DNA of 47,827 nt from Octopus bimaculoides (taxonomy: Eukaryota). Below are positions 5,263 to 46,810 of this stretch, in pieces. Position 1 is the stretch's first letter. Each line of letters starts with the position of its first letter. The position numbers were made by a program, and so were the translations under genes. The stretch is taken from assembly GCF_001194135.2 (NCBI RefSeq), contig NC_068998.1, positions 29,447,337 to 29,495,163 of the forward strand, written 5' to 3'. The notes beneath the pieces were generated by a model. It saw only the letters and a list, made by a program, of their open reading frames with translations. It ran no database searches and had not been told where the DNA came from.

Positions 5263-5888
5263 TATATATATCTCACTCACTCTCTATTGTTTTCACTTTC
5301 ATTTTTCAGACGCTATTATTTTCACTTTAAGTTCAATCGTTATTGTTTTTACTGTATGTTTTCAATCGCTATTTACAAACAACAACGACAAATTACTGAC
5401 AGAAAGTAGTTCACAATTACTGATGAAAGTAATTTCATGCATAATTTACTGACAGAAGTAACTTCATAAATTTCACTTCAATCCATACACTTCCTTAAAT
5501 TTGCCTACAAATTTCTTATTTACTTTTGCAACGTTTTGGGTTTTTTTTTGTTGTTGACGGAATTACTGAGAAAAATAAGATCATAATTTACTGACAGAAG
5601 TGACATCAAACATTTCACTTAAATCTGTACACTTTGTTAATTTCCCTAAAGATTTCTTATCTACTTTTGCAACGGTTTTGTGATTCTCTGTTGTGAACGG
5701 TCCTTTCGATACTGGCTCTTTGGTTCACTGACAAATTTTGATTCAACCCGTACAAATCTTTATTTTCCGCAAAAATGTCTTATTCACTTTCTGCCCGTTG
5801 TATTCAGAAATATAATTTCCGTTACCCAATTATTTTCATTGATTACTATCTTCTGCCCCCGTGTATTTCTGTATACATATATATAACC

Positions 5889-6505
5889 ATGTCTAGAAGA
5901 AAATGTCAAATTTGTCTACAACGACAAGGTCAGCCAAAAGAATGTCTCTGTCCAGGGAAAGAGAGACAGCTGCCGAAAGGGAAGCATACCAAGAAAAGAA
6001 CACTGTGCACTACAAAAGCCCAAAGTGATGAACAGAGGTATGCACAGTTGACAAGGAATAGGATCTCCACTGCAGAACGAAGAACCGTTGCAACAGCCCA
6101 GAGAAGCAACTTCTATGAAGCAGTTTTCAGTTATGACCCAGTAGTTCATTATGCAGATGATACTAGAGTAGCCATTGGTGCAATGACAACTGAGTGCATA
6201 CATTGTAAAGCAAGGAAGTGGTCTGGAGAGGCACCTGCACTGTGCTGCAGTGGTAGAACGGTTAAACTCCCTGTAATCCCCCAACCTCCAGAGCCATTGA
6301 AGAAACTGTTGTCATCAACTGACCAAGATTCGAAGCATTTCCAAAACTAAATTAGACAATACAACACTTCACTACAGATGACATCACTTGGAGACACAAG
6401 AGATTTAACTGAGCCAGGATTCATGCAAACTTTCAAGATCCAAGGTCAGATTTATCGTCGGATTGGCTTTCTACTACCTCTGTCAAATGAATCACCAAAA
6501 ATCGG
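5889..6505 (+). pseudogene. Helitron RepHel N-terminal region, disrupted
   Basis: VFSYDPVVHYADDTRVAIGAMTTECIHCKARKWSGEAPALCCSGRTVKLPVIPQPPEPLKKLL...KHFQN*IRQYNTSLQMTSLG...FMQTFKIQGQIYRRIGFLLP. This is the zinc-finger plus YN..FQMTSFG and FK.QGQ.YH.IG motif set of Helitron RepHel. In-frame stop at 6348-6350. Confidence 0.9.
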
Positions 6506-6581: not shown

Positions 6582-7276
6582 NNNNNNNNNNNNNNNNNNN
6601 NNNNNNNNNNNNNNNNNNNNNNNNNNNNNNNNNNNNNNNNNNNNNNNNNNNNNNNNNNNNNNNNNNNNNNNNNNNNNNNNNNNNNNNNNNNNNNNNNNNN
6701 NNNNNNNNNNNNNNNNNNNNNNNNNNNNNNNNNNNNNNNNNNNNNNNNNNNNNNNNNNNNNNNNNNNNNNNNNNNNNNNNNNNNNNNNNNNNNNNNNNNN
6801 NNNNNNNNNNNNNNNNNNNNNNNNNNNNNNNNNNNNNNNNNNNNNNNNNNNNNNNNNNNNNNNNNNNNNNNNNNNNNNNNNNNNNNNNNNNNNNNNNNNN
6901 NNNNNNNNNNNNNNNNNNNNNNNNNNNNNNNNNNNNNNNNNNNNNNNNNNNNNNNNNNNNNNNNNNNNNNNNNNNNNNNNNNNNNNNNNNNNNNNNNNNN
7001 NNNNNNNNNNNNNNNNNNNNNNNNNNNNNNNNNNNNNNNNNNNNNNNNNNNNNNNNNNNNNNNNNNNNNNNNNNNNNNNNNNNNNNNNNNNNNNNNNNNN
7101 NNNNNNNNNNNNNNNNNNNNNNNNNNNNNNNNNNNNNNNNNNNNNNNNNNNNNNNNNNNNNNNNNNNNNNNNNNNNNNNNNNNNNNNNNNNNNNNNNNNN
7201 NNNNNNNNNNNNNNNNNNNNNNNNNNNNNNNNNNNNNNNNNNNNNNNNNNNNNNNNNNNNNNNNNNNNNNNNNNNN
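6582..7276. other. assembly gap (N)
   Basis: N run. Confidence 1.
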
Positions 7277-7323
<47 letters not shown>

Positions 7324-7365
7324 ATGGATGGATGGAAGGATGGATGGATGGATGGATGGATGGAT
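7277..7365 (+). repeat. (GT)n then (GGAT)n microsatellite
   Basis: Read directly from the sequence. Confidence 0.95.
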
Positions 7366-8124: not shown

Positions 8125-8295
8125 GTGAGCGCGCACCCGTGCAGATGTTAATGTGCATGTGTTTGTGTGAGGTAAATTAAATAAAATGGTTAGTTTGATA
8201 CTGGTGGTATTGTCAACATGGGTTTCATGGTATCAATAAGAGTAGTAAAAGGCGGTGAATGGCACGATCGGCAGAAATGTATTTTGAAGAATAAT

Positions 8296-8697
8296 CTTTT
8301 ATCTTTTATCCGTTTCAGTCATTAGACGACGGCCATGCTGGGTTACTACCTTGAAGAACGTTTAGTCGAATTAATCGACCCCAGTACTTATTTTGTTTTT
8401 AAAGCATGGTACTTATTCTACCGTTTTCTTTTTGCCGAACCGTTAAGTTACGAGGATGTAAACAAACCAACATCAATTGTCAAGCGTGGTGAGGGACAAA
8501 CACAGACGCAAAGACATACACACACACATGCACAATATACAACGGGTTTCTTTCAGTTTTCGTCTACCAAAATCCACTCACAAGGCTTTGGCTGACCCGA
8601 AGCTATTGTAGAAGACACTTGCCTAGGTGCCATGCTGTGGGACTGAATCTGGAACTATATGGTTGGGAATCAAACTTCTTACCACACAGTCATGACT
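8296..8697 (-). mobile_element. SINE family A, full length
   Basis: All modules present: tRNA-like head, central CA tract, ttgtcaagc module, 3' tail and (aaagat)n end. Confidence 0.9.
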
Positions 8698-12610: not shown

Positions 12611-13199
12611 ATGATTCTTGTTACTAAAGGTTTAGGCCCCACTCCACCCCTTTTTCTTTTTTACATATATCCCTTAGATTACTTATGTTTAGAGTTATTT
12701 TTATATGCTTGACAAATTGAACATTTTTACACAATTTTCTCATGTTTACACAATCAAACATTTAAGAAGAAATTCTGAAGAAATTTAAGTAGTTCTATAT
12801 CAGTATTGCTTTTATTATTTTAAAGATTATAGCTATAATACTTAGTATAATATTTTCGTGACCCTTTCCCTCACAATATATCTTTTACATTATTCCTACT
12901 TAATTCAGCTATTATATTTCCGTCACATTTATTCTAAAAATATAGCATATGTGAAGTCTGCACTTGTTTTACGCTGGTCTTTCGAAAAAATTTGTTTACT
13001 TTTCTGACTTGAGTCATCTAAAGTAGTTACGTTTGTTTTCTCTAGTAGCCGGGCAACCACCGACGAAATCGTCCCCACCCCGGTTTGAATGTGAAACGAG
13101 CTGTTATGCCTACTCCAAAAATCAAGTTATAATATTTTGAATAAATTTCCAAAACTGTTCTCTTTAGAGTTGAAGGAAAGACTGAAGAAAATCTATCAT

Positions 13200-14120
13200 T
13201 ATAGAAGTATCTCACAAAGTAGTCAAAAATGGAATGGCTTTTGATCTCAACCGTATGATAATTGTTCTTTCATAATAGGCATTAGGACAATTTCATGCTT
13301 TCTTTATTTCCGAAGTGAATCACAAGTTGACAAAGCTAACAGTGCCAAGAGAACTTATGCAGTATTGAGTAATCATGGAATGAAGCACGTGCTTCTTTTC
13401 CTTCAGGGAATTTACCGAATGTTGAATTTCAGTTTCAATCGTTTTAGTTTACATAATCAGTATTTAATGATATCATTAGTATACGAAAATATTTTGAGTT
13501 TCTTAATTAAAGATGAATTGCAGAAAGAAACTAAATTAATCGAAATTGACTCCAGTAATTAAAGTAATTACAAAAACTTTAATAGTGTTTATCTTGAAGA
13601 AAGGTAACAGCACATTTAATTAGTGAACCTTTTGATGATAAGTTCAGAGTTAGAAGATTTAAAATTGATTCCTTGAAATTTCTGTGACATTTTATATTCA
13701 AATGAAAGTTTTCATTTTAGTGAAGAGAGAATTATTGCTAGATTAAAGATATAAAGATTTAAGATCTAAAAGAAGCTGATGATCTTAGTGTATCTATCAT
13801 TGTTATCATTACGCTAATTGTCCATTTCTGCCCATTGTGACCGAAAGCAATCTAGAGAGGGTATTGTTTAACAGCAGACAATTTACTTACTCGACAGAAA
13901 ATAATCCCGAATATTGGTACCAGAGAAAGTACACAAGAGATGGGCTTCATCATTCAAAATATGATTTGTAATCGAATTTAATGACTAATTTAACCATCTT
14001 GCTACATTCATCAACATTCACTGAATAAATATTCTCTTAAATTAACTGTATCAAAACAAGAAATAACAATTCTTTAAAAACAGAGAGACTGCATAAGATA
14101 GATTACTTGCAAAGCAATTT
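13200..14120 (+). pseudogene. highly decayed hAT-family transposase
   Basis: From 13975: NLMTNLTILLHSSTFTE*IFS*INCIKTRNNNSLKTERL resembles the hAT dimerisation domain (LPHSSA.VERIFS.MN.IKT..RN.L..E). Near 13.24-13.32 kb, WLLISTV...*DNFML(F)FISEV resembles the RW.S...W..L..FF motif. Multiple stops and frameshifts. Confidence 0.6.
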
Positions 14121-16124: not shown

Positions 16125-16515
16125 TGGGCTGGGTGGGTAGTCTTACCTGGAAATGGACCGAGAAGAAACTATCCCTGAAGAGTCGGGTGGAAGTAGCCAA
16201 TGCCTACACTGCATCCGTCTTCTATTACCTCCTGACCGTTGTGTCTTGCCCTGCTTTATGACTGGTTGGAATGGAATGCTTTCTGCAAAGAGGCGTGTTC
16301 CGCTGTCAGCTGCTCCATTTTCTGTCAACATTCGTTAAGTGGAGGACTAGGCATTTTGCACGGTTATTGATGTGCAAATATGAAATGAGGTTGCGATACC
16401 TCCAGTGTTTCCTTGACGGTGGGCAAGTGTTGTCACTGTGTATTAGACACTCATTTCCGCAGCTTGTCTCTTTGACAGAGTTACAGTCGTGGATCAAGCG
16501 TAGATTAATGCAGAA
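16125..16515 (+). mobile_element. Tx1/L1-clade LINE ORF2 fragment (post-RT region)
   Basis: WTEKKLSLKSRVEVANAYTASVFYYLLTVVSCP...MRLRYLQCFLDGGQV...FPQLVSLTELQSWIKRR. It matches the L1/Tx1 LS..GR...N....S...Y motif and is homologous to 45306-45497 (minus). Confidence 0.75.
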
Positions 16516-16775
16516 TTAAGACAATCTTTTGCACTTCCTGCATTGATGGTAAGTCAGGGTCATTCTCAAATAATTTTCAGTTCCTCTTTTGATCATTCCA
16601 AGTGCTCCTACAATCACTGGTACTGTAACCGTCTTGAGATATCACATCTTTTCGATTTCTATTCGCAGATCTTATATTTTTTGAGCTTATCAAATTCTTT
16701 TTCCGAGATATTATGGTCACAGGACATGCTCATGTCAATCAATAAACAGACTTTATTGTTCTGACCTTTCACAAC
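16515..16775 (-). mobile_element. R4/Dong-like retrotransposon fragment (restriction-like endonuclease domain)
   Basis: Minus frames: VVKGQNNKVCLLIDMSMSCDHNISEKEFDKLKKYK..IEK...KTVTVPVIVGALGMIKRGTENYL..PDLPSMQEVQKIVL, i.e. the REL PD..D...K..KY and P.VVGALG motifs. Confidence 0.8.
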
Positions 16776-16790
16776 ATTATTATTGTTATT

Positions 16791-19306
16791 TTGGTTTGGC
16801 TCAGGTCCTGGTAGAATTTAAGTGGGTAGCGGGTTATCACCTGTAATCACAAGTTTTCAGCAGTCTTTCAAGTGCTTAGAACCCTCCTGATAATCCTTGT
16901 TCTCCCTAAGAGACAAACTTTCTGTATGAGCTCTATCGGGCATTCTATTCCAATCTCCTTCAGCCATTTGTCTATATCTTTGCTTACTGTTCCCAACGTA
17001 CCAATTATTATAGGCACGATCTTTATTGTTCCCATACTCCAAATTCTTCCTATTTCAAGCTTTAAGAGATTGTATTTTTTTTTCGTTTTTCTTCTTTCTT
17101 TACAATCCTGGAACCAAACGGGCAACCTCGCTTTTCCTTATATATAATTATTATGTTTGATCTATTATTTTCTAGCTTCTTATCCGTTTGAATAGGAAAG
17201 TCCCACAAAACCTTACATTTCTCCGGCTCCAATACTCTTTTGACTCGATGATTGTACCATGTGTTCAAATCCCAATTTCTGGCACAGTTTCCAGTGTAAA
17301 ACTTTTACAATCTGATCGTGCCTCCATTTCTTAGATTCTTGCTGTGCCAAGTAGGGGCAATGTGTACCACTGTCTCGTTTCAAGTTCCACAGACTCTACA
17401 ATTTTCTGACACATTCTCTCCATATATATTTTTTTCTCAAATTGTTTGTTTTTATCGTATGATCTTGGGCTGCTACAATTAGGCTCTCTGTTTCTTTTTT
17501 TAATTGCCCCTTTTTTAACCAAGCCCAGGATTTTGTTCGATATAGGTCTTCAGTGGCTCTCCAAAATTGGCCATGCAGAGGTTTCTTTTCGATCTGTCTC
17601 ACGTGCTTTCTTTGTATTTCATTCTTGTCTTTTTCTCCTATTACGCGCTTCATCACCTGTTCTTTATTCATTGTCTTCAGTAGTTTTTCTGTACTTCTCT
17701 GTAAATACTCTACTAGGCTTTTTCTTTCCAAACTTCTGTCTTACTGTATATAGATTAATTCTGACGTCTTTTTGTCTTGGTACAGTTGCAACTTGTCTTT
17801 CTATCTTTATTAGACTTTCCGCGCTTTCTTTATGTCTCGCCAGCCTGTTCCACAACCTTCCCCAAAATTCTTTACTTTTTCCCGCATCTGGAATCAGTTC
17901 CTGGTGTTGGTCTCACTCTATTTCCTCAAAAAGACGCCTCATATTTCATTGGAAAAGTCTATACTGTTCGAAACCTTTGCATCTAACATCATATCTTTTC
18001 ATTTTGTATCAATTCTTCGTGTACTGGTTGTTTTCCCCTTTCTTCTAACCTGTACTGTTCATTCAATTTTCTGATTTCTACCTTATTCTTGAGCTCCACA
18101 CTCATTATCCTATTCATTTGCCTCAGTTCTTTCCGTGTCTTTTCCAGCTTCATTTGTATTCTCTTCCGCCAGTTTGGTTTTTTTCCTTTCATTTGATTTT
18201 ATATCTTCATCTTTTTCGCTTGCAGCCTACTATGTTAGTTGGTTTGTTTCACTGAAGTTTTCTGTTTTAATCAGACTTCAAACGCCATTTACTTTGCTTG
18301 TGGCTCTTCCCACTTTTTTTATGTTCATATATCTTACATTGTTCCCATCAGTCATTTTGCCTCGCAACATTTCTAATACCTCCTTCTCTTCATCATTCAA
18401 GTCTTGTGCAGTACTTACTGTCACTTGACCATCTAGATTGTTTTCATTAGCTACTTTATCAGTATTCTCCGGTACTCTGGTTTCCATCTGTTTCATGTTC
18501 TTCATCTCTTACCCATTCGTTACCGCTTTCTGCTACAGCTGTTTCACTATCCTTCTGCTCTTTTTTATGTTTGGATTGCTCTTGCTTGGTTATCAGTCGC
18601 TGGGCGGATATTTCAAAACCTTTTTCATCCCCTATTCTCTTGAATCGCTTCAAAAAGCCTCTTTTATTTGGTACACTTCTCAGCCAGCATTCTATTACTG
18701 TTTTGTTTATATCTTTTTCCCATTTCGTTCTTTTTCTTTTGCACTTTTCACTGCGATTTTGGTCCTGATCAATAGCTTGATGACGACCTGCTGGAGCCTG
18801 GTCAGATACTCCCTGCCTGCCGTGCGCGACACTTTCATGGTTAACAGTTCCAGTTCCGATAGTGAAGCTGTGGTTATTATTTAATTTTGACATCACTCAT
18901 TTAGAGGTAGCATTTGTAAGGTTGTGCAATAACCAGTATCGTGACACTATCACTAGGAGAGTTGCTAGCCAAGGCTCTAAGAGTCCACATTTACCCTTGT
19001 GTACAGTTTTTAGTGTCAGTTCGTTCACTCCATTGTTTTATATCTTTCTATTTGTCATTTTCATTCCTGAGAATTTTGGTGTTGAGGTAACACAACCATC
19101 AGTGTTTTTATTGAGACACTGTCTCTAGAGGGGTTGCCGACCAAGGCTAAAGGGATTCCTCTCCCATGAGATTCGCGCTAACGCCAACATGGTATTTCTA
19201 GGTCTCGAGGTCGGCTTACAGGTACTACACTTTACCCAACGGTGATCTGAAAATAGTTTTGGTTAAGGGCAGCCTTGTCCTTCCCACGTCGCGACGCTAC
19301 AACCAG
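16791..19306 (-). mobile_element. R4/Dong-like non-LTR retrotransposon, 5' UTR to 3' end, RT domain deleted
   Basis: N-terminus KRTKWEKDINKTVIECWLRSVPNKRGFLKR; KKPNWRKRI; PLHGQFWR..SWAWLKKGQLKKETESLIVAAQD; LAQQESKKWRHDQIVKVLHWKLC; KVLWDFPIQTDKKLENNR; KIVPIIIGTLGTV...IQKVCLLGRTRIIRRVLST*. AAT/AAC-rich repeats lie on both flanks. Confidence 0.88.
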
Positions 19307-19479
19307 ATTATTGTTGTTGCTCTTGTTGTCTTTTTAACTCTCATTTTTCCAGGTCAATAAATAAACGCTAGACAATTACTGAAGTTGATATAATCGACTG
19401 TTTCCTTTTCACTAAATTTGAGACCTTGTACCTATGTCATAAACCAGTATCGTTGTCTTCATTAAAGTGTATATACAAA

Positions 19480-22109: not shown

Positions 22110-24300
22110 GTTTCTACTTCCCTTTCCTCACCATATTCTCAGTACTTTCAAAATGCATCTGCCAATCTGTTTCTTATGGGCTGAAGCAAAAGCCATCACC
22201 ACCGCCAAACTACTTCGACTTGAAGAAAGCAGACTAGAACTGTTACCGCACTGAGTCACAACGCCCAAACTGACTTGAATTTCACAATTCCGGAGATGTC
22301 AATTCTGTACTTCAGAACATCCTCAATTCAAACCGGGCCATATATGAAGCATAAGTATCTCGTAAATGCATTAAAAAAACCAAAATGCAATTTGGGAGTC
22401 TGCAACACTCCGAATTGCCAGGAGAAGACATCATGATACTGAACAGGAGTACAGACTACATCGAACATAGGAAAATAGAAGGCGCATCTAACCATCAGGT
22501 GACAACGCCCCCCCCCCCCAAAAAAAAACAGTGCTTGAATTTGAACGTGTAGCAAGCAAACCTAACAACAAAGTGCTCTGGAAATATGTTCGTTCGAAGC
22601 AGAAACCTCATTCTCCAGTTGACCCGCTTTGTAATCTCCACACAGGTCGGACTATTGATGATTCTAAAGAATGCACAGAACTTACGAATTGTTGAATGCT
22701 ATGTTGCTGAAAATCCAAATGTACCATCTTCATCACCTCTGACATCAAATTCTATAACATCTGTTAAATTTACCCCTGCAATACTGCGACGCTATCTCAA
22801 GTATAAGCACAACTATGCTTCTCCTAGTCTTGATGATATTGCTTCTCTGCTTCTCAAACGCAGTGGGTTCTTACTTTTGCACCAGCTTTCATTCTTCTTC
22901 CAGAGCAGTGGAAAACTGCCAGCGTCATTCTCCAGTCAGTCTTACAAAAGCTGTATTACCAAACCGTTGGAATCCTCTGTCAGAGAAACATCTTGGAACT
23001 TCTAGAACTCCCAAAGCCTTATTCAACCCTCACAATTTGGATTTATCCCTTATTTCAGCTGCTGTAGTTAACTCATCGAGTTTCTTGAAGACATCACCCG
23101 AATACCTGATGGCGACTCATGGGTGGATGTTATCTATGCTTTCAATTCTGTGCCACACAAACGACTTATGGCACAACTTTCTGCAATGGGTGTGAGAGAT
23201 GATCGTTATAACTAGTTGAAGTCCTTCATTCTTGGTCGAAAAGATGTAACCATAGTTCTAGGACAGCATCCTTCAGCCTTTGAGATGACATCTGGTGTAC
23301 CACCGGGATCCGTTCTTAGACCGCTCTTGTTTGATGTATATATTGACATAAATGCCAACTTGAAGAACGTTACAGTGTTGAAATACGCAGATGACATCAA
23401 GATGCGCCCTGAAATAAAAAGAACAGATATTATACGCTAAAGATCTTTCCAGCAATCAAACCTACACATAATGCAGCAATGGATTACTGACTTGCAACTC
23501 AAACTGGCTAAGAACAAGTGCACCTCTATGCATTTTGGGAAGAAAAATCTAGCTTTTACATACTCTCTTAAGAAGTCTGCTGGTGAACGTGGGCTGGGCA
23601 TTATTTTCAACAGTAATTTGCGTTGGACTAATCACATATCTAAAATTGTCAAGAAGGCCGAGTGTATCTTAGCACCACTCAGTAAGATCTTTGTCTGCCG
23701 TTCTCCAGTTATCTATTTAAAGCTGTATATGGTTACTCTTAGACTTTGCTCACCAGTATGGAACCCTTGTCTTGCTCAGTATATCAATCTCCTGGAAACT
23801 GTTCAGAAACGTGCAAACAGACGAATACCCGGCGTCAGGCATTTACCATACTCTGAACGTCTTGCTTTCCTGGGCGTAGGCACATTGAAGCTCCGACGTC
23901 TGGAAACTGACTTGGTAGATACCCATAAGATTATCAATCTTTTCAATAACAACATTGGGTACCTTTTTGAATTCCATATGTCTAACATTCGTGGACATGA
24001 TTACAAAATCAATAAACGACACAACACCCATGACTTACAGAAACACTTTTTCACACTCAGACTTAATGAAGGATGGAATAAACTAGCTGTATCAGTTGTT
24101 AGTTGTCCAGCCACTATATCCTTCAAAACTTCCATGCTTTCTGGAATTCTCTAACGGTACACCCGATCTTCACCACCAATTTTAAACGACTCATTTCCTA
24201 TTCACTTCCTGTGCGTTATTTTATATGCTGTTCATGCACATTTGGCTACTTTTTCTGAAGAGCACAGTATACCATATTTTTATTATTATTAAGTGTCCTC
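22110..24300 (+). mobile_element. CR1-clade LINE, ORF2 pseudogene (linker, RT, C-terminal domain)
   Basis: LWKYVRSKQK; QFGF; FNSVPHKRL; SGVPPGSVLRPLLF (GVPQGSVLGP motif); KYADDIK (YADD); GIIFNSNLRWTNHI; SPVWNPCL; LETVQKRANRRIPG..LPYSERL; WNKL. Several frameshifts. Longest open piece 23471-24154. The 5' boundary is approximate. Confidence 0.92.
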
Positions 24301-26099: not shown

Positions 26100-26241
26100 T
26101 AGGGTGTTAGGGTTATGGTTTAGGGTTACGGTTACGGTTAGGGTTAGGATTAGTGTTACGGTTACGGTTGTAGGGTCAGGGTTAGGGTTTAGGGTTAGTG
26201 CTAGGGTTAGTGTTAGGATTAGGTTTAGGATTAGGGTTGGG
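26100..26241 (+). repeat. degenerate interstitial telomere-like (TTAGGG)n array
   Basis: Hexamer period with TTAGGG, TTACGG, TTAGTG, TTAGGA and TCAGGG variants. Confidence 0.85.
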
Positions 26242-26620
26242 TAATCGTGCGGGTGTTAATCTGAAAAATTACAGATATGTGAAAAGTACCGACCCTGCCA
26301 TCTATTATAACTTTTGTTGTTCTGTTTAATATATACATAGACTATGCCTACAAACAAGAGAGTTTGCTGGGGAAAGACAGCAACCGGTTTAAAATGACAG
26401 CAACAGACTGCAGCAATTCACCACATTCCAGAAGTTACTTTGAACATAATGCAAAATGGTGCATCAACATCTTCTGCCCAATCTGATAGAATTCTGGCAA
26501 AACTGTGTAGCAACAGATCGCCAGCAATTGCTTCATCACAAATTGCCGTCCTAACTCCTGCGAAAAGGGATTACCCTGCTATGTATAATCAGGACAGCGC
26601 AAAAAGTTGTTTTGCACAAG

Positions 26621-27163: not shown

Positions 27164-28179
27164 ATTATATACTATTATAAAACATATAAGATTGCAGATT
27201 CAAACATGTACTATAAATAAATACAATGCATGAAGTCTGAATTTTACTTCAAGAATTAGACGGAATATACATAACCCCAATGTAAACTAGGAGGACCATA
27301 TAAAATATTGCAAAAGGAATTTAAAAGTAGATACGAACTCTGCGAAATGTAGAATTGGCTTAATTAGCTTACAAATCGTGAATAGCTTTAGCAATAACAC
27401 TTATAACACTATATAAAATTCACACCAAGCATATTTAAAAGTCGTTATATCTAACACATAAGCTCTTTTTGAAACATATGTAAGAAGAATACCACAGATT
27501 TTCCAAAAGATGATGACTTTTAAAATAGAAAAGCAATATTCCTCTAAATATGCTTAACTCACAGCTGTAAGGTAATCAGTTTTGTAGTACTAAATCTCCT
27601 GTGAATTCTTACTGCATGCTTACTTAACCCAGAACATTACTGAAAGAACGGCGCCAGCTGAAATGATGTAGCACTGCAGGAGGAATAAAATTGAATTCAA
27701 TACTGTTTGTTTCAAAGGATGCTGTTTCCAAGGGCATTAACGATATCATATAACTTTCAAATGTAGATCGAAACAGCGAAACTACGAAACAAAGGAAAAT
27801 GATATTAGTAGAAACCCCATTTGTAAAAATGACTGAAACTTTTTTTTTAGTTGTTCGACGTTCTCGTCATCAACAGCGCCATTGTCATCATTTCCCTCAC
27901 CATTGCTCCTGTCGTTGTTGTTAACATCAAATTTATCCAAATCGGATAAAATTTTTATTGACCTCCAATTAACCGCCATTTGACGGATTATATTTTCCCC
28001 AGATAACAATATAGTTGACATTAGTCTTGTTACAAAAAGAAGAGAAGCAAATCTGTAAAAACAAAATATTTATATAAAAACGACTGACAACATTGTTTCA
28101 TGGTCTGTTTTTCCCTTAGTGGTAATGGCTTCTTAACCCTTCACTTCTCTAAAGCTAGTGTCCCAGTTGCTACTGCTGT

Positions 28180-28238
<59 letters not shown>

Positions 28239-28239: not shown

Positions 28240-28894
28240 ATTCTTTCCCCAGGTTTTTATTAGGACTGATGCTAATTCCTCCTCCCACCCCTCAACACCA
28301 CTGTGCCCGTTATAGTGGACCATACTCTTCACCATCGTCTTTCCTTCTTTCTCCGCTCATTATCTCTGTTTTCCAATAGTATATATATACCTACCCCCTC
28401 ATCCTACACTTTTTCGTGTGCTTCTGTTTTCCTCTCAACTTTTCTCTCTTGCTATGCATTCCTTCCTTCATTTTTTTCTTTCTTTCTTTCTTTCTTTCTT
28501 GATTCCCTCATTAATTCTTTCTTGTTTTACTTCAATTCCTTCATTTTCATTGCTTCTTTATATACTATTTGCTAAACTTGTCACTCTCTTCGTGTTTTTC
28601 TTCCCATTTAAAAAATTTTTTCTCAATCTTCCTCAATAGTCAAAATTCTTCCTATTTCTTACATTCATACTGCCCACCCCCAAGTAAATGAATTTTAAAA
28701 GAGGAGAAGGAGAGACGAGTGAGTCTAGTATTCGAAGGCAGGTTGTACGAGACCAGACAACTTTGACGAGCAAATACCTTTATGGTAACTTTATAGAAAG
28801 GACAAAGCACGCCGACGGGGTATAAACTAAAGATTGCCTAGAAGTAATTTTATATCAGTCAGTCGAGTAGCCATTTTTCTGTGTGTAGCAGCAT

Positions 28895-29812
28895 CGTCAA
28901 CTGAATTTAGGAGAGGAAGGGAGAGTCTTGAAGATGACCCAAGGTCTGAACATCCTGCAATTGCCACCACCGAAAACATTGATCATGTTTACTACATGGT
29001 GGTGGATGAGAGAGTTGAGAATGTTCTGCCCAATGAACTTGATATGGCGAAGGTTTCTGTTTGGTGGGTGCCACGTTTGATACCAGATCAAAAGCGCACC
29101 AGGCTGATCATATCATTGGAAAATCTGACTTTGTTTGGGGTAGATCCAGCTGGTTTTCTTGAACGTTACCTTATTCAGGATGAGTGTCGAGTTTATCACT
29201 TTGAACCAGAGACAAGGAGACAATCCATGCAGTGGGAACAGCCCTCCTCACAGCTCCAAAGACGGCCAAGGTCGTTTCATTTGCAGGGAAGGTGATGGCC
29301 TCAGTTTTGGGGGATATAAAAGGTTTTTTGTCATTGTGCTTATTGACTAACTTCAAAAGGGCCACACCATTAATGGAGATTAGTATTTCAACTTGCTGAG
29401 GCAGTTACGAAAGACTATCAAGATCAAACGCCCCGAAAAACTGACGAAAGGGTCTTGGTTTATCAAGCACACAAGTTCTTGATTTTAATGGCTGCTGTGC
29501 GTGATTGTGGCTTTGAACTGGTTGATTCCTCTCCCAATTCTCTTGATTTGACCCATCTAACTATTATCTGTTTCTCAACATAAACAACGCTTCGCTGGGA
29601 ACCAGTATCGTAGTGATGATGACGTCATATTTACTGCTGACGAGTTTTTTGACCAGCAAGATGAAAGCTTCTTCACCAATGGGATCCAAGCACTGCAACA
29701 CTGATGGACGAAATGTGCTCACTACATGGGGGACTATGTTAAAAGATAAACCTCATTTGTTCATATTCCATGAGAGCATCTTGGTGAGTCTATGAACTTT
29801 TCAGCCGACCCT
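28895..29812 (+). mobile_element. mariner (DD34D) transposon relic, 5'-truncated
   Basis: EFRRGRESLEDDPRS..P; WVPRL; QDECRVYHFEPETRRQSMQW; later frames KVMASV.., CGFELVD..PNSLDL (YSPDL-like) and C-terminus GDYV. Right TIR-like gtctatgaacttttcagccgaccctc at about 29785-29812; left TIR not found. Confidence 0.9.
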
Positions 29813-36895: not shown

Positions 36896-38048
36896 ACTGA
36901 TGAAATTGATGAAATTACACCAATGTAATTTCACTTGACTAGTCAGGCAATGCAGAAGCGATAATATATGAAGTAGAATTCAGTTCTCTAAGCTATACCA
37001 TACAATAAAGCTTAACCACTGTGTTGGTAGGTAGATTTAAATAGTATTATTATTTCACCCACACGTCATCCTTTAGTTATTGAAATAATATTACGGTACT
37101 ACAAAATCTGGCATTTAAGGAAATAATGTACAAACTTTGACACAAAAAGCAAAACCCTAAAAGGGGTAGACAGTATATAAATAAATGAAACAAGTACAAC
37201 TTAAGTAAATCTTAGAAAATTAAAATCTTGAGTGACTGATTTTTTAATGTCCTTATTTAAGCACAAAGTCGGACATTTTACGACATGGTGTTACTTCCAC
37301 AAATAAACCTTTTGAGATTTTGGAAACCACCACCAGCCCAAGATTAAGCATGCTAGATGTTATATCCTTACGCCTCCAGTATCATAGTACGGTTGATATT
37401 GTCGACGATAGATAAAGAATACACGGTAACAGTGTTATAACAATACAAAATAGAAGCAGCGGCAGTAAGAAACACACAAGGAACCAGCAATTTTTTACGA
37501 ACCAACAATCAATATTCCCAACACACTAACTCGCACTGTAAACTGTAGCTGGACTTCGAAGACCAAACTACGAACTGATTTCTTTTATTTAGGCACATGG
37601 CCTTTATAAAGAGGGAACACCACAAGGACAGACAAAACAATACATGGGGTACATGCAAACATATAACGAATGGATTATGAATATGAAAGTAATGGCTTTC
37701 CTACACCCCAAAATAGGTAGTTCCATTTTACTGTCTTTTTTGTTTAAATAAAATAATTACTTAGCACAATTTTATACCAAGCATTATATTATCATATGTA
37801 ATTACTGATAACAAATCATCGTAACGAACTCGTAATCCTGTTGTTTCTACTCTGTCGCCAAATATATCCTTCAACCTTCCTGCTCTATCATCCTCCAACA
37901 ACACCGCTTTCAAATTTCAGTTTTCCTCTGTGTCAGCCAGTTTCACTCTTATTACATTTTTCATTTTAGAAATACTTTTCTCTATTTCTTCGCTCTTTTT
38001 GTAAGTAACGAACATTGTTTCGTGCCTCCCCTTCGGTAGTTCTGTCTT

Positions 38049-43462: not shown

Positions 43463-43475
43463 TAATAATAATAAC

Positions 43476-43514
<39 letters not shown>
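43463..43514 (+). repeat. (TAA)n tract 1; further tracts at 43683-43709, 43894-43937 and 44494-44523
   Basis: Read directly from the sequence. Confidence 0.95.
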
Positions 43515-43515
<1 letters not shown>

Positions 43516-43682
43516 TAACATACAGAAAATTGCACTACTGGGTACTGCACACATTCTACGCAAAACACTTTCAATACAGTAAACATAAAAGCACCACAGC
43601 AAACCACAGCACATACCCAAGGCGCACAGAGCTGCGCTCGGTAGTGAAGTGAAAGCACGTTATAAAAATAAAACTACTGAAC
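43515..43682 (+). mobile_element. extremely 5'-truncated R4/Dong-like 3' end (family X)
   Basis: NIQKIALLGTAHILRKTLSIQ* (the QK..LLGTA.ILR.VL C-terminus of R4/Dong ORFs), then a 100-bp 3' UTR with a gcgca-cagagc-tgcgc hairpin. (TAA)n on both sides. Confidence 0.82.
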
Positions 43683-43709
43683 AATAATAATAATAATAAT
43701 AATAATAAT

Positions 43710-43893
43710 GAAACTTCAAGACTTCTTAAGGCAGCTGGAAATCCCATGCAAGATTGATGTCTTGCAAAAAGCAGCCTTATTGGGCACAGCGCACATCTTA
43801 AGGAAAGTATTATCTGTCTGAGGTCCTTGTTGTGACTTGACAGATGACTAAAGACTCCGGTGCCTTTTTACCTACACTGTGTTACGAAGGAAC
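43710..43893 (+). mobile_element. extremely 5'-truncated R4/Dong-like 3' end (family Y)
   Basis: KLQDFLRQLEIPCKIDVLQKAALLGTAHILRKVLSV* (43711-43821), then a different 3' UTR. (TAA)n on both sides. Confidence 0.85.
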
Positions 43894-43938
<45 letters not shown>

Positions 43939-43939
<1 letters not shown>

Positions 43940-44494
43940 GCCCTGATGCAGTACCAAGCAGTGACTCTCATGGCTTTTGATCTTAACTGATTGGAAGTGT
44001 TATCATGTACATTGTTTTGTCTTGGTATAAAAGATGGGCTACAGCAAATATTCTGCTCAATACCACAGATTTGCTTGTCTGTTGTTTTATCTTAACCAGT
44101 TGAGCACGTCCCTTGGTGGCTAACGATATGTGCACCTCTGATGACGAGCAGAAGTAGTGGGGGAACATCATAGCCATGTGTTGAAAGGAATTCTTTGGGG
44201 TTTGGATAATTCACATCTGAAAACATGGGTGTTTCATTCAGCATCCTTAGACAACCCTTATTCAGGGACCTTTTGAGCGGGATGGGCTATTCGACCTGAA
44301 GAAAATTCTAACTGGGCCCTACCTGCAAGGTCATACGCTGTTTATCTTGATATGAGATCACCATGTCGCGCACATATTGTTGTAATGCATGTGCCTGGTG
44401 TACCCTTATCAGACGGGTAGTCATGATGGGTATACTGGGTTTCGTATATTTTACTCTAGTGTCACTTTGATGGCATGCACTGCTCTCTCACTCA
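43939..44494. mobile_element. 556-bp non-coding interspersed element embedded in (TAA)n
   Basis: Sharp boundaries (tgccctgatgcag...ctctctcactca) against TAA tracts, GC-richer than the flanks, no meaningful ORF. I recall it as an abundant octopus repeat (memory, not a search). Confidence 0.65.
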
Positions 44495-44523
44495 ATAATA
44501 ATAAAAAGAATAATAATAATAAT

Positions 44524-46628: not shown

Positions 46629-46810
46629 AGGCATGGCTAACAAGGCTGTGGTTTCAGGTTCAGTCCCATTGCGTGCAGGGGCGTATATTCCGGGTGTGCT
46701 AGATGTGCGCTGCACACCCAATACAACAACTACCATATGCCACTGTAACGCCCTACCAAAGGGACTTCTAGTTTAACCTGGGGTCGACAAATGCCTTGTA
46801 AGTGGAATTT
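46629..46810 (+). mobile_element. degraded SINE family A head interrupted by a mini-MITE
   Basis: ggcatggct...ggttcagtcccattgcgtg [insert] ...gacttctagtttaacctggggtcgacaaatgccttgtaagtggaatttg. Confidence 0.65.
46676..46745. mobile_element. 70-bp MITE-like element with hAT-type ends
   Basis: Ends caggggcgtat / atatgccactg (9 of 11 inverted match) plus internal inverted repeat gggtgtgc...gcacaccc. Confidence 0.55.

Follow-up and report, generated by a model that had tools for sequence, protein, structure and literature searches.

The 47,827-nucleotide stretch of the Octopus bimaculoides genome analysed here (NCBI RefSeq assembly GCF_001194135.2, contig NC_068998.1, positions 29,447,337 to 29,495,163 of the forward strand; hereafter the window) contains, at positions 43463–44523, four (TAA)n tracts that alternate with three unique segments, X, Y and Z, in the order TAA-X-TAA-Y-TAA-Z-TAA. 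We interpret this stack as a single (TAA)n tract that was probably hit by three separate target-primed reverse-transcription insertions, carried out by TAA-specific machinery of the Dong/R4 type with its restriction-like endonuclease (RLE), and we put the probability of this interpretation at roughly 0.7. The components of the stack are as follows.

43463–43514, plus strand: (TAA)n tract 1, 17.3 units with a single A-to-C break at 43475; read as the 5' remnant of the target tract.
43515–43682, plus strand: X, 168 bp; extremely 5'-truncated copy of a Dong-like element (RLE type, without long terminal repeats; non-LTR).
43683–43709, plus strand: (TAA)n tract 2, nine perfect units; read as the tail/target junction at the 3' end of X, adjoining the 5' end of Y.
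43710–43893, plus strand: Y, 184 bp; 5'-truncated copy from a second Dong-like lineage.
43894–43937, plus strand: (TAA)n tract 3, 14.7 perfect units; read as joining the 3' end of Y to the 5' end of Z.
43938–44493, plus strand: Z, 556 bp; complete unit of a dispersed octopus repeat family, non-coding and non-autonomous.
44494–44523, plus strand: (TAA)n tract 4, ten units (88%) broken by 'aaaaag' (AATAATAATAAAAAGAATAATAATAATAAT); read as the junction at the 3' end of Z and what is left of the target on that side.

All four tracts, located with Tandem Repeats Finder and a regular-expression search, read TAA on the plus strand. The 21 overlapping matches to (TAA)8 with at most one mismatch all fall within 43463–44523, while 100 dinucleotide shuffles gave 0. 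Outside the stack, the TAA/TTA runs in the 47.8-kb window are limited to two of four units each, and there is no long TAA tract. The stack is bordered by unique sequence on both sides, ...ctatacgtcagagt (ending in ...cgtcagagt) on the 5' side and gttttcttttattaatcac... (starting with gttttctttt...) on the 3' side. The original prediction, which was made from the letters of the window, had described this same alternation, and its coordinates, its codon counts of 21 and 36 for X and Y and its length of 556 bp for Z are all correct.

In frame +3, segment X reads NIQKIALLGTAHILRKTLSIQ up to a stop codon. These 21 codons (43517–43579) and the stop (43580–43582) are followed by a 3' untranslated region (UTR) of 100 nt (43583–43682), which ends in ...ctgaac immediately 5' of tract 2 and folds with z = -2.5. 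Segment Y reads KLQDFLRQLEIPCKIDVLQKAALLGTAHILRKVLSV up to a stop codon in frame +2, with 36 codons at 43711–43818, the stop at 43819–43821 and a 3' UTR of 72 nt (43822–43893) that ends in ...aggaac and runs straight into tract 3. A hidden Markov model (HMM) of the family tail, scanned over six-frame translations of 118 kb of octopus DNA, finds exactly four tails: X (independent E-value, i-E, of 6.5e-9), Y (i-E 5.9e-13) and two on the minus strand at 16.5–17.1 kb. This shows that stubs as short as 21–36 codons can be assigned with statistical support through the conserved C-terminal motif. X and Y were predicted to be the C-terminal stubs and 3' UTRs of two different Dong-like open reading frames (ORFs) in the same orientation, and this is what is found. 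Over 18 aligned codons (61% nucleotide identity) the two differ in 15, of which 12 are synonymous and three non-synonymous. Because 12 of the 15 differences are synonymous, X and Y come from two long-separated lineages, both under purifying selection. The two lineages are homologous and belong to one superfamily, although neither stub is a duplicate of the other, so that the description of the stack as three unrelated elements is correct for Z, which is unrelated in sequence, but loose for X and Y.

The closest relative of X is P0010/L002, with 19 of 20 amino acids identical and 82% nucleotide identity over 57 nt. Y is 69% identical to P0003 at the amino-acid level and 73% identical in nucleotide sequence to positions 8223–8320 of the eukaryotic contig L001, the similarity continuing beyond the stop codon. 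In both L002 and L001 a 3' UTR of ∼75–170 nt leads into terminal TAA-type repeats. L002 is a 587 bp scaffold of the TARA Oceans metagenome from the open ocean, which suggests that DNA of a cephalopod or another mollusc was sampled. A protein search with the translations of the non-coding frames of X and Y and with the ORFs of both unique flanks, aimed at further octopus copies and at the orthologous or empty site, gave no match at E ≤ 1, and an exact-sequence look-up of the ORFs from Y and Z found none on record.

When the X and Y stubs were searched against a protein collection, about 100 short ORF calls were obtained. In these relatives the motif extends upstream as ..IDVAxPxD..EKxxKYxxL..VIPVVIGALG..LQKxALLGTAHILRKVLS, and a profile built on the short fragments matches 13,171 representative clusters, at the extreme C-terminus in every case. 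Full-length relatives of 977–1204 amino acids lie on contigs of 3.2–7.1 kb and carry a central RVT_1 domain. Among the eight full-length relatives tested, the reverse transcriptase (RT) domain RVT_1 was found in 8/8, a weak zf-RVT (CCHC) domain in 7/8 and the apurinic/apyrimidinic endonuclease (APE) domain Exo_endo_phos in 0/8. Their RT matches the solved R2 proteins with E = 5e-28, and the block ..RPDIIIQDR..LIDVAVPND..EKLSKYKDLE.. aligns with the R2 endonuclease motif (a weak second stretch, non-significant on its own). In a TAA-flanked copy in L001, the C-terminal module can be followed in one frame through CRMC..HHIVSGC and RRPDIVIV..ILDIAIPVD..EKIVKY to ..LLGTARIIRQVLDI and the stop codon. 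The presence of APE and RT ORFs upstream of the tail in L001 prompted us to consider an element with two endonucleases (APE and RLE). This was rejected because TAA tracts separate those ORFs from the tail-bearing copy and because the full-length relatives have no APE.

In the first 350 amino acids of nine full-length relatives no C2H2 or CCHC pattern is present, and a (K/N)W(S/T)xxE..W..NP motif is visible in several. A Myb domain was not detected at their N-terminus by Pfam or by a profile search against the PDB; the N-terminus of R4/Dong elements is described as a diverged Myb/SANT-like domain without N-terminal zinc fingers (PMC7998251). A scan of viral contigs for the family tail gave no true match. 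The architecture of RT, CCHC and RLE without APE is read on the relatives, as X and Y themselves keep only 21 and 36 codons, respectively. Since some HERO families also target microsatellites (PMC4640811), we refer to X and Y as Dong-like, RLE-type and TAA-specific, which seems a safer description than that of proven R4 members.

The relation of this family to TAA repeats was examined in 80 loci (L005–L084; 283 kb of metagenome contigs, host DNA of unidentified organisms) that were picked with the tail profile. Of the tails in these loci, 62 have enough downstream sequence, and 47 of them (76%) are followed within 600 nt by a TAA tract on the same strand, at a median of 154 nt past the stop codon. 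A repeat on the opposite strand is found within the same distance for six (10%). Over the whole 283 kb there are 142 tracts on the same strand and 18 on the opposite strand, a ratio of 8:1. The proteins tell the same story in another form. Asparagine and isoleucine are the two non-stop readings (AAT and ATA) of (TAA)n, and runs of at least five of either residue occur in 30 of 134 short representative proteins, where the only other homopolymers are of methionine (four) and leucine (one). Most of these runs stand directly 5' of the tail, with a truncation point that differs each time, and a few stand at the C-terminal end. The family is TAA-associated on the same strand across many genomes and has variable 5' truncation points. 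The expectation that relatives of X and Y are preferentially flanked by TAA thus holds at the level of the family.

Stacks are also found in these loci. At least two same-strand tracts are present in 44 of the 80 loci and at least three in 15. Between the tracts lie 58 substantial units, 39 of which are 5'-truncated tails of 59–141 codons that all reach the exact C-terminus, while the other 19 are non-coding. Two or more substantial units in a row occur in 12 of the 80 independent loci (about 15%), which shows that stacking in TAA tracts is common and not exceptional. The lengths of the between-tract units in L005–L084 cluster around 420–580 bp. This points either to a length at which truncation is favoured or to a short derivative of defined size in the Dong-like family of that host.

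L001 carries two stacks. Its positions 6808–7364 and 13195–13285 are non-coding units that lie between TAA tracts and have a common 3' end (..tcgaaacgta..aacagttgtgtt..). One of them is 557 bp in length, nearly that of Z, and is unrelated to Z in sequence. These units may represent an analogous non-autonomous TAA-specific family in another lineage.

Segment Z has fixed ends, 5' ATGCCCTGATGCAG... and 3' ...CTGCTCTCTCACTC, and stops in all six frames, in agreement with its prediction as a non-coding unit. Using its translations as bait, matches were obtained to three Octopus gene models (P0104–P0106) and one Logan ORF. Full-length copies are present in O. bimaculoides (L004, positions 62546–63101, 86.6% identity) and in the Logan contig L003 (75% identity), and two further, partial copies are found in gene models. 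The three full-length copies occupy different sites, with 75–87% identity and unrelated outer flanks. In a three-way alignment the homology begins exactly at ATGCCC/ATACCC and stops exactly at CTCTCACTC/CTCTCACTT. On the 5' side the three copies are flanked by (AAT)14, AAATAATAAT and (AAT)4–5, and on the 3' side by an interrupted (AAT)10, by (AAT)11 and by AGTAATAATAATGAT..., respectively. At the two other sites of Z, X and Y are absent, and therefore X, Y and Z do not form a fixed composite. No terminal inverted repeats are found in Z.

A long hairpin lies about 50–100 nt from the 3' end of Z (about 44393–44440). The fold of the 3' region gives z = -3.1 for the window copy, -2.0 for the L004 copy and +0.2 for the L003 copy, which is diverged and was folded alone. 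In the alignment, two double-sided changes in L003 leave the hairpin stem intact, so that conservation of the hairpin is suggested by these three sequences. Z is a complete mobile unit. The description that suits it best is that of a non-autonomous, TAA-associated retroposon; with no head of the RNA polymerase III type, it is not a classical short interspersed element (SINE). The Z family is the only item described here that may not have been reported before.

Copies of Z also reach into gene models. In L004, positions 62546–63160 comprise a copy of Z and its (AAT)11 repeat just upstream of an exon of the gene for the PP2A 55-kDa regulatory subunit B. The NCBI gene model P0105 translates the 3' part of Z and its TAA tract (..CAWCTLIRRVVMMGILGFVYF..ALSLNNNNNNNNNNNDNND..) as if they were coding; the repeat has probably been mis-annotated or exonised here. 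The models P0104 and P0106 begin inside Z on its minus strand, and an exact-sequence look-up of these two found none on record.

About half of the TAA/TTA tracts in the 70 kb of L004 directly adjoin the 5' head of an abundant octopus SINE that resembles transfer RNA (tRNA) and starts with ggtggtaagctggcagaa... At these tracts (27598–27633, 28200–28217, 37913–37933, 46748–46762 and 66332–66349) the SINE stands in either orientation relative to TAA. Either AT-rich microsatellites are a preferred target of the SINE, or they arise at its 5' junction. An all-against-all comparison of the sequences upstream of the TAA tracts of L004 appeared to reveal a shared family; this candidate was rejected, as the shared sequence is really the tRNA-like SINE, in both orientations, and not a Dong-type 3' end.

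A second, older stack lies in the same window on the opposite strand and contains the two minus-strand tails found with the HMM.

16510–19312, minus strand: second stack (W1 and W2), outside the main stack.
18731–17730 fused to 17728–16871, minus strand: W1, N-terminal part joined to a CCHC/RLE tail; internally deleted Dong-like copy.
16787–16773, minus strand: short 'aataacaataataat' between the 3' UTR of W1 and W2.
About 16772–16510, minus strand: W2, 5'-truncated RLE remnant.

In W1 the RT is missing and internal stops are present, and a 3' UTR follows the tail. The putative 5' end of W1 is at ∼19312 (minus strand), where a GC-rich sequence (ctggttgtagcgtcgcgacgtggg...) begins after 'caacaacaataat'. 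A self-cleaving ribozyme resembling that of hepatitis delta virus (HDV) is described for the 5' end of R4/Dong elements (PMC3774820) and would be expected at this place in W1, while X and Y have lost their 5' ends. For the putative 5' end of W1, Rfam returned nothing at E ≤ 10, and such ribozymes are hard to detect by sequence.

The window as a whole has a G+C content of 36%, contains assembly gaps and is littered with transposon remnants. A CR1/jockey-like ORF for the C-terminal part of an RT is found at 23471–24154, a fragment of a mariner-like transposase ORF at 28834–29295 and an interstitial, degenerate (GTTAGG)n telomere-like array beside an assembly gap at 26106–26242. An ORF of 191 amino acids at 5775–6350 is of unassigned affinity.

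The history that we favour for the main stack would start from one (TAA)n microsatellite between ...cgtcagagt and gttttctttt.... By analogy with the published biology of R2 and Dong, the endonuclease would nick the TTA strand and the (UAA)n 3' end of the element RNA would pair with the nicked repeat and prime the synthesis of complementary DNA (cDNA). Because of this nick and this pairing, every copy would come to lie in one orientation relative to TAA. Each copy would divide one tract into two and bring with it a fresh TAA tail. X and Y would then be abortive copies of two autonomous lineages in which reverse transcription halted after about 170–185 nt, and Z a full-length member of a non-coding family that relies on this machinery for its own insertion, the three having arrived in separate events. 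We infer that Z depends on Dong-type enzymes and that its 3' hairpin plays a role.

A different history that deserves serious attention, although we consider it unlikely, is a single event. In this case the RT was primed on TAA, copied the whole of Z, jumped to the (UAA)n tail of an RNA of the Y lineage and then to that of an RNA of the X lineage, and aborted soon after each jump to leave one chimeric cDNA. End-to-end template jumping is an established property of the R2 reverse transcriptase. Furthermore, Z, the unit nearest to the priming site, is of full length and the two upstream units are extremely short, as would be expected if processivity drops after jumps, and the contrast between the perfect tracts 2 and 3 and the interrupted outer tracts 1 and 4 fits internal tracts that are young RNA-templated tails of the same age. 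Against this, a single event needs the RNAs of three different families in one particle, and the stacks found elsewhere often contain several units of ordinary truncated length (about 400–700 bp), which repeated hits explain equally well.

Appreciably less probable still is a later assembly, in which the units were inserted at different TAA tracts and were subsequently joined by unequal crossing-over, slippage or ectopic recombination, or in which the entire block was copied from a composite formed elsewhere. Long perfect microsatellites are prone to recombination and slippage, but neither the window nor the 70 kb of O. bimaculoides nor the searches based on proteins gave a second X, Y or block, and Z is found alone elsewhere. 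Direct repeated insertion accounts for the same-strand order with no additional steps, and stacks are frequent in the family.

Finally, the notion that the TAA tracts are simply the elements' own 3' tails, with no recognised target and with the units brought together by chance nested or adjacent insertion or by an AT-rich preference of the endonuclease, can draw on the facts that TAA repeats form the end of some non-LTR elements whose targets are non-specific, that the SINE in L004 adjoins TAA/TTA in either orientation and that AT-rich microsatellites may attract elements non-specifically, but it is scarcely credible because truncated copies have TAA directly 5' at many different truncation points, all three copies of Z have TAA-type repeats on the 5' side too and the 142:18 strand bias departs from the strand neutrality of a plain AT-rich preference.

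Several observations weigh against three separate insertions by Dong-type machinery. No orthologous locus or empty-site allele was recovered in the searches made, so that three separate events are a probable reading. The absence of further X and Y copies from the octopus DNA and searches just mentioned counts on this side as well, and the family-level statistics come mostly from non-octopus DNA. The placement in R4, as opposed to HERO, is putative and is drawn from the architecture, the target and the published annotation of octopus. The remaining points concern Z as a partner element. ARAGORN finds no tRNA in it and Rfam no tRNA, 5S, 7SL or small nuclear RNA at E ≤ 10, no promoter, tRNA-like head or ribozyme was found in Z, and it has no sequence in common with the 3' UTRs of X, Y and W1. 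Inspection by eye only of the first 150 nt of Z showed a misfit to the P1/P1' arrangement of HDV-like ribozymes.

The features of X, Y and their relatives can be set beside those of known elements. Dong of Bombyx mori and DongAg/DongBg, members of the R4 clade, share with them a (TAA)n target in a fixed orientation, a single ORF (in the relatives) with RT, CCHC and a C-terminal PD-(D/E)xK endonuclease and no APE, and copies that are often 5'-truncated and have TAA on both sides. Set against these elements, X and Y preserve no more than 21 and 36 codons. HERO elements and the NeSL-related, (TG)n-specific Togen are also RLE-type non-LTR elements, some of which target microsatellites (PMC4640811), but the published TAA-specific lineage is Dong. 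Its insertion into (TAA)n is known from insects, molluscs and cnidarians (PMC7998251, PMC3812793), DongBg being a named snail example (PMC3812793). In O. vulgaris, Dong-R4 long interspersed elements are abundant and recently active, with five families and 1,129 recent insertions compared with 13 recent insertions for HERO (PMC13282606), and a full-length Dong consensus exists for O. bimaculoides (PMC9115989).

Z resembles the short internally deleted elements (SIDEs) of R2 and other partnerships of short and long interspersed elements in being short and non-coding, with fixed ends and a structured 3' region, and it resembles the R2 SIDEs in that its target and tail type are those of the autonomous family. 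It differs from a SINE or a demonstrated SIDE in having no tRNA-, 5S- or 7SL-like head, no detectable 5' ribozyme and no similarity to the UTRs of X, Y and W1. W1, as an internally deleted Dong-like copy, is the unit of this window that is more directly comparable to an R2 SIDE.

Tandem insertion of target-specific RLE elements is on record, as Utopia-1_NVit is 'occasionally inserted in tandem' (PMC4640811). As with Utopia in U2 arrays and with elements that are specific for telomere repeats or ribosomal DNA, a repetitive target that is hit again gives a tandem result. Unlike in these systems, the target here is a microsatellite that would be split and re-created by each insertion, and three families are present in one tract. 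The original prediction had seen the tract as a self-renewing landing pad. This idea is correct, but its novelty was overstated since it follows from the published target specificity (PMC7998251, PMC3812793, PMC13282606, PMC9115989). As to the further suggestion that such arrays are easily missed because the stubs are too short for ORF finders, homology-based repeat annotation is independent of ORF finders.

A broader picture, which we put forward as a tentative possibility, is a self-amplifying system in octopus that consists of TAA microsatellites and Dong-type elements. Each insertion would split a tract and add a fresh RNA-templated tail, and therefore the supply of targets would grow with copy number. 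Several autonomous lineages and at least one dedicated non-coding parasite, the Z family with its conserved 3' hairpin and no recognisable SINE head, might share this niche, and a large share of the genomic (TAA)n might be made by transposable elements and not by slippage.

The locus adds one more clear case to a kind that is already known. It is what a family inserting only into TAA repeats would be expected to leave behind, and the current understanding of Dong/R4 biology stays unchanged. Its value is that it shows, in full resolution, the behaviour of a target-specific retrotransposon family. For the annotation of octopus genomes it means that many (TAA)n 'simple repeats' are element junctions, that Z-like units are drawn into gene models such as P0105 and that the Z family merits classification.

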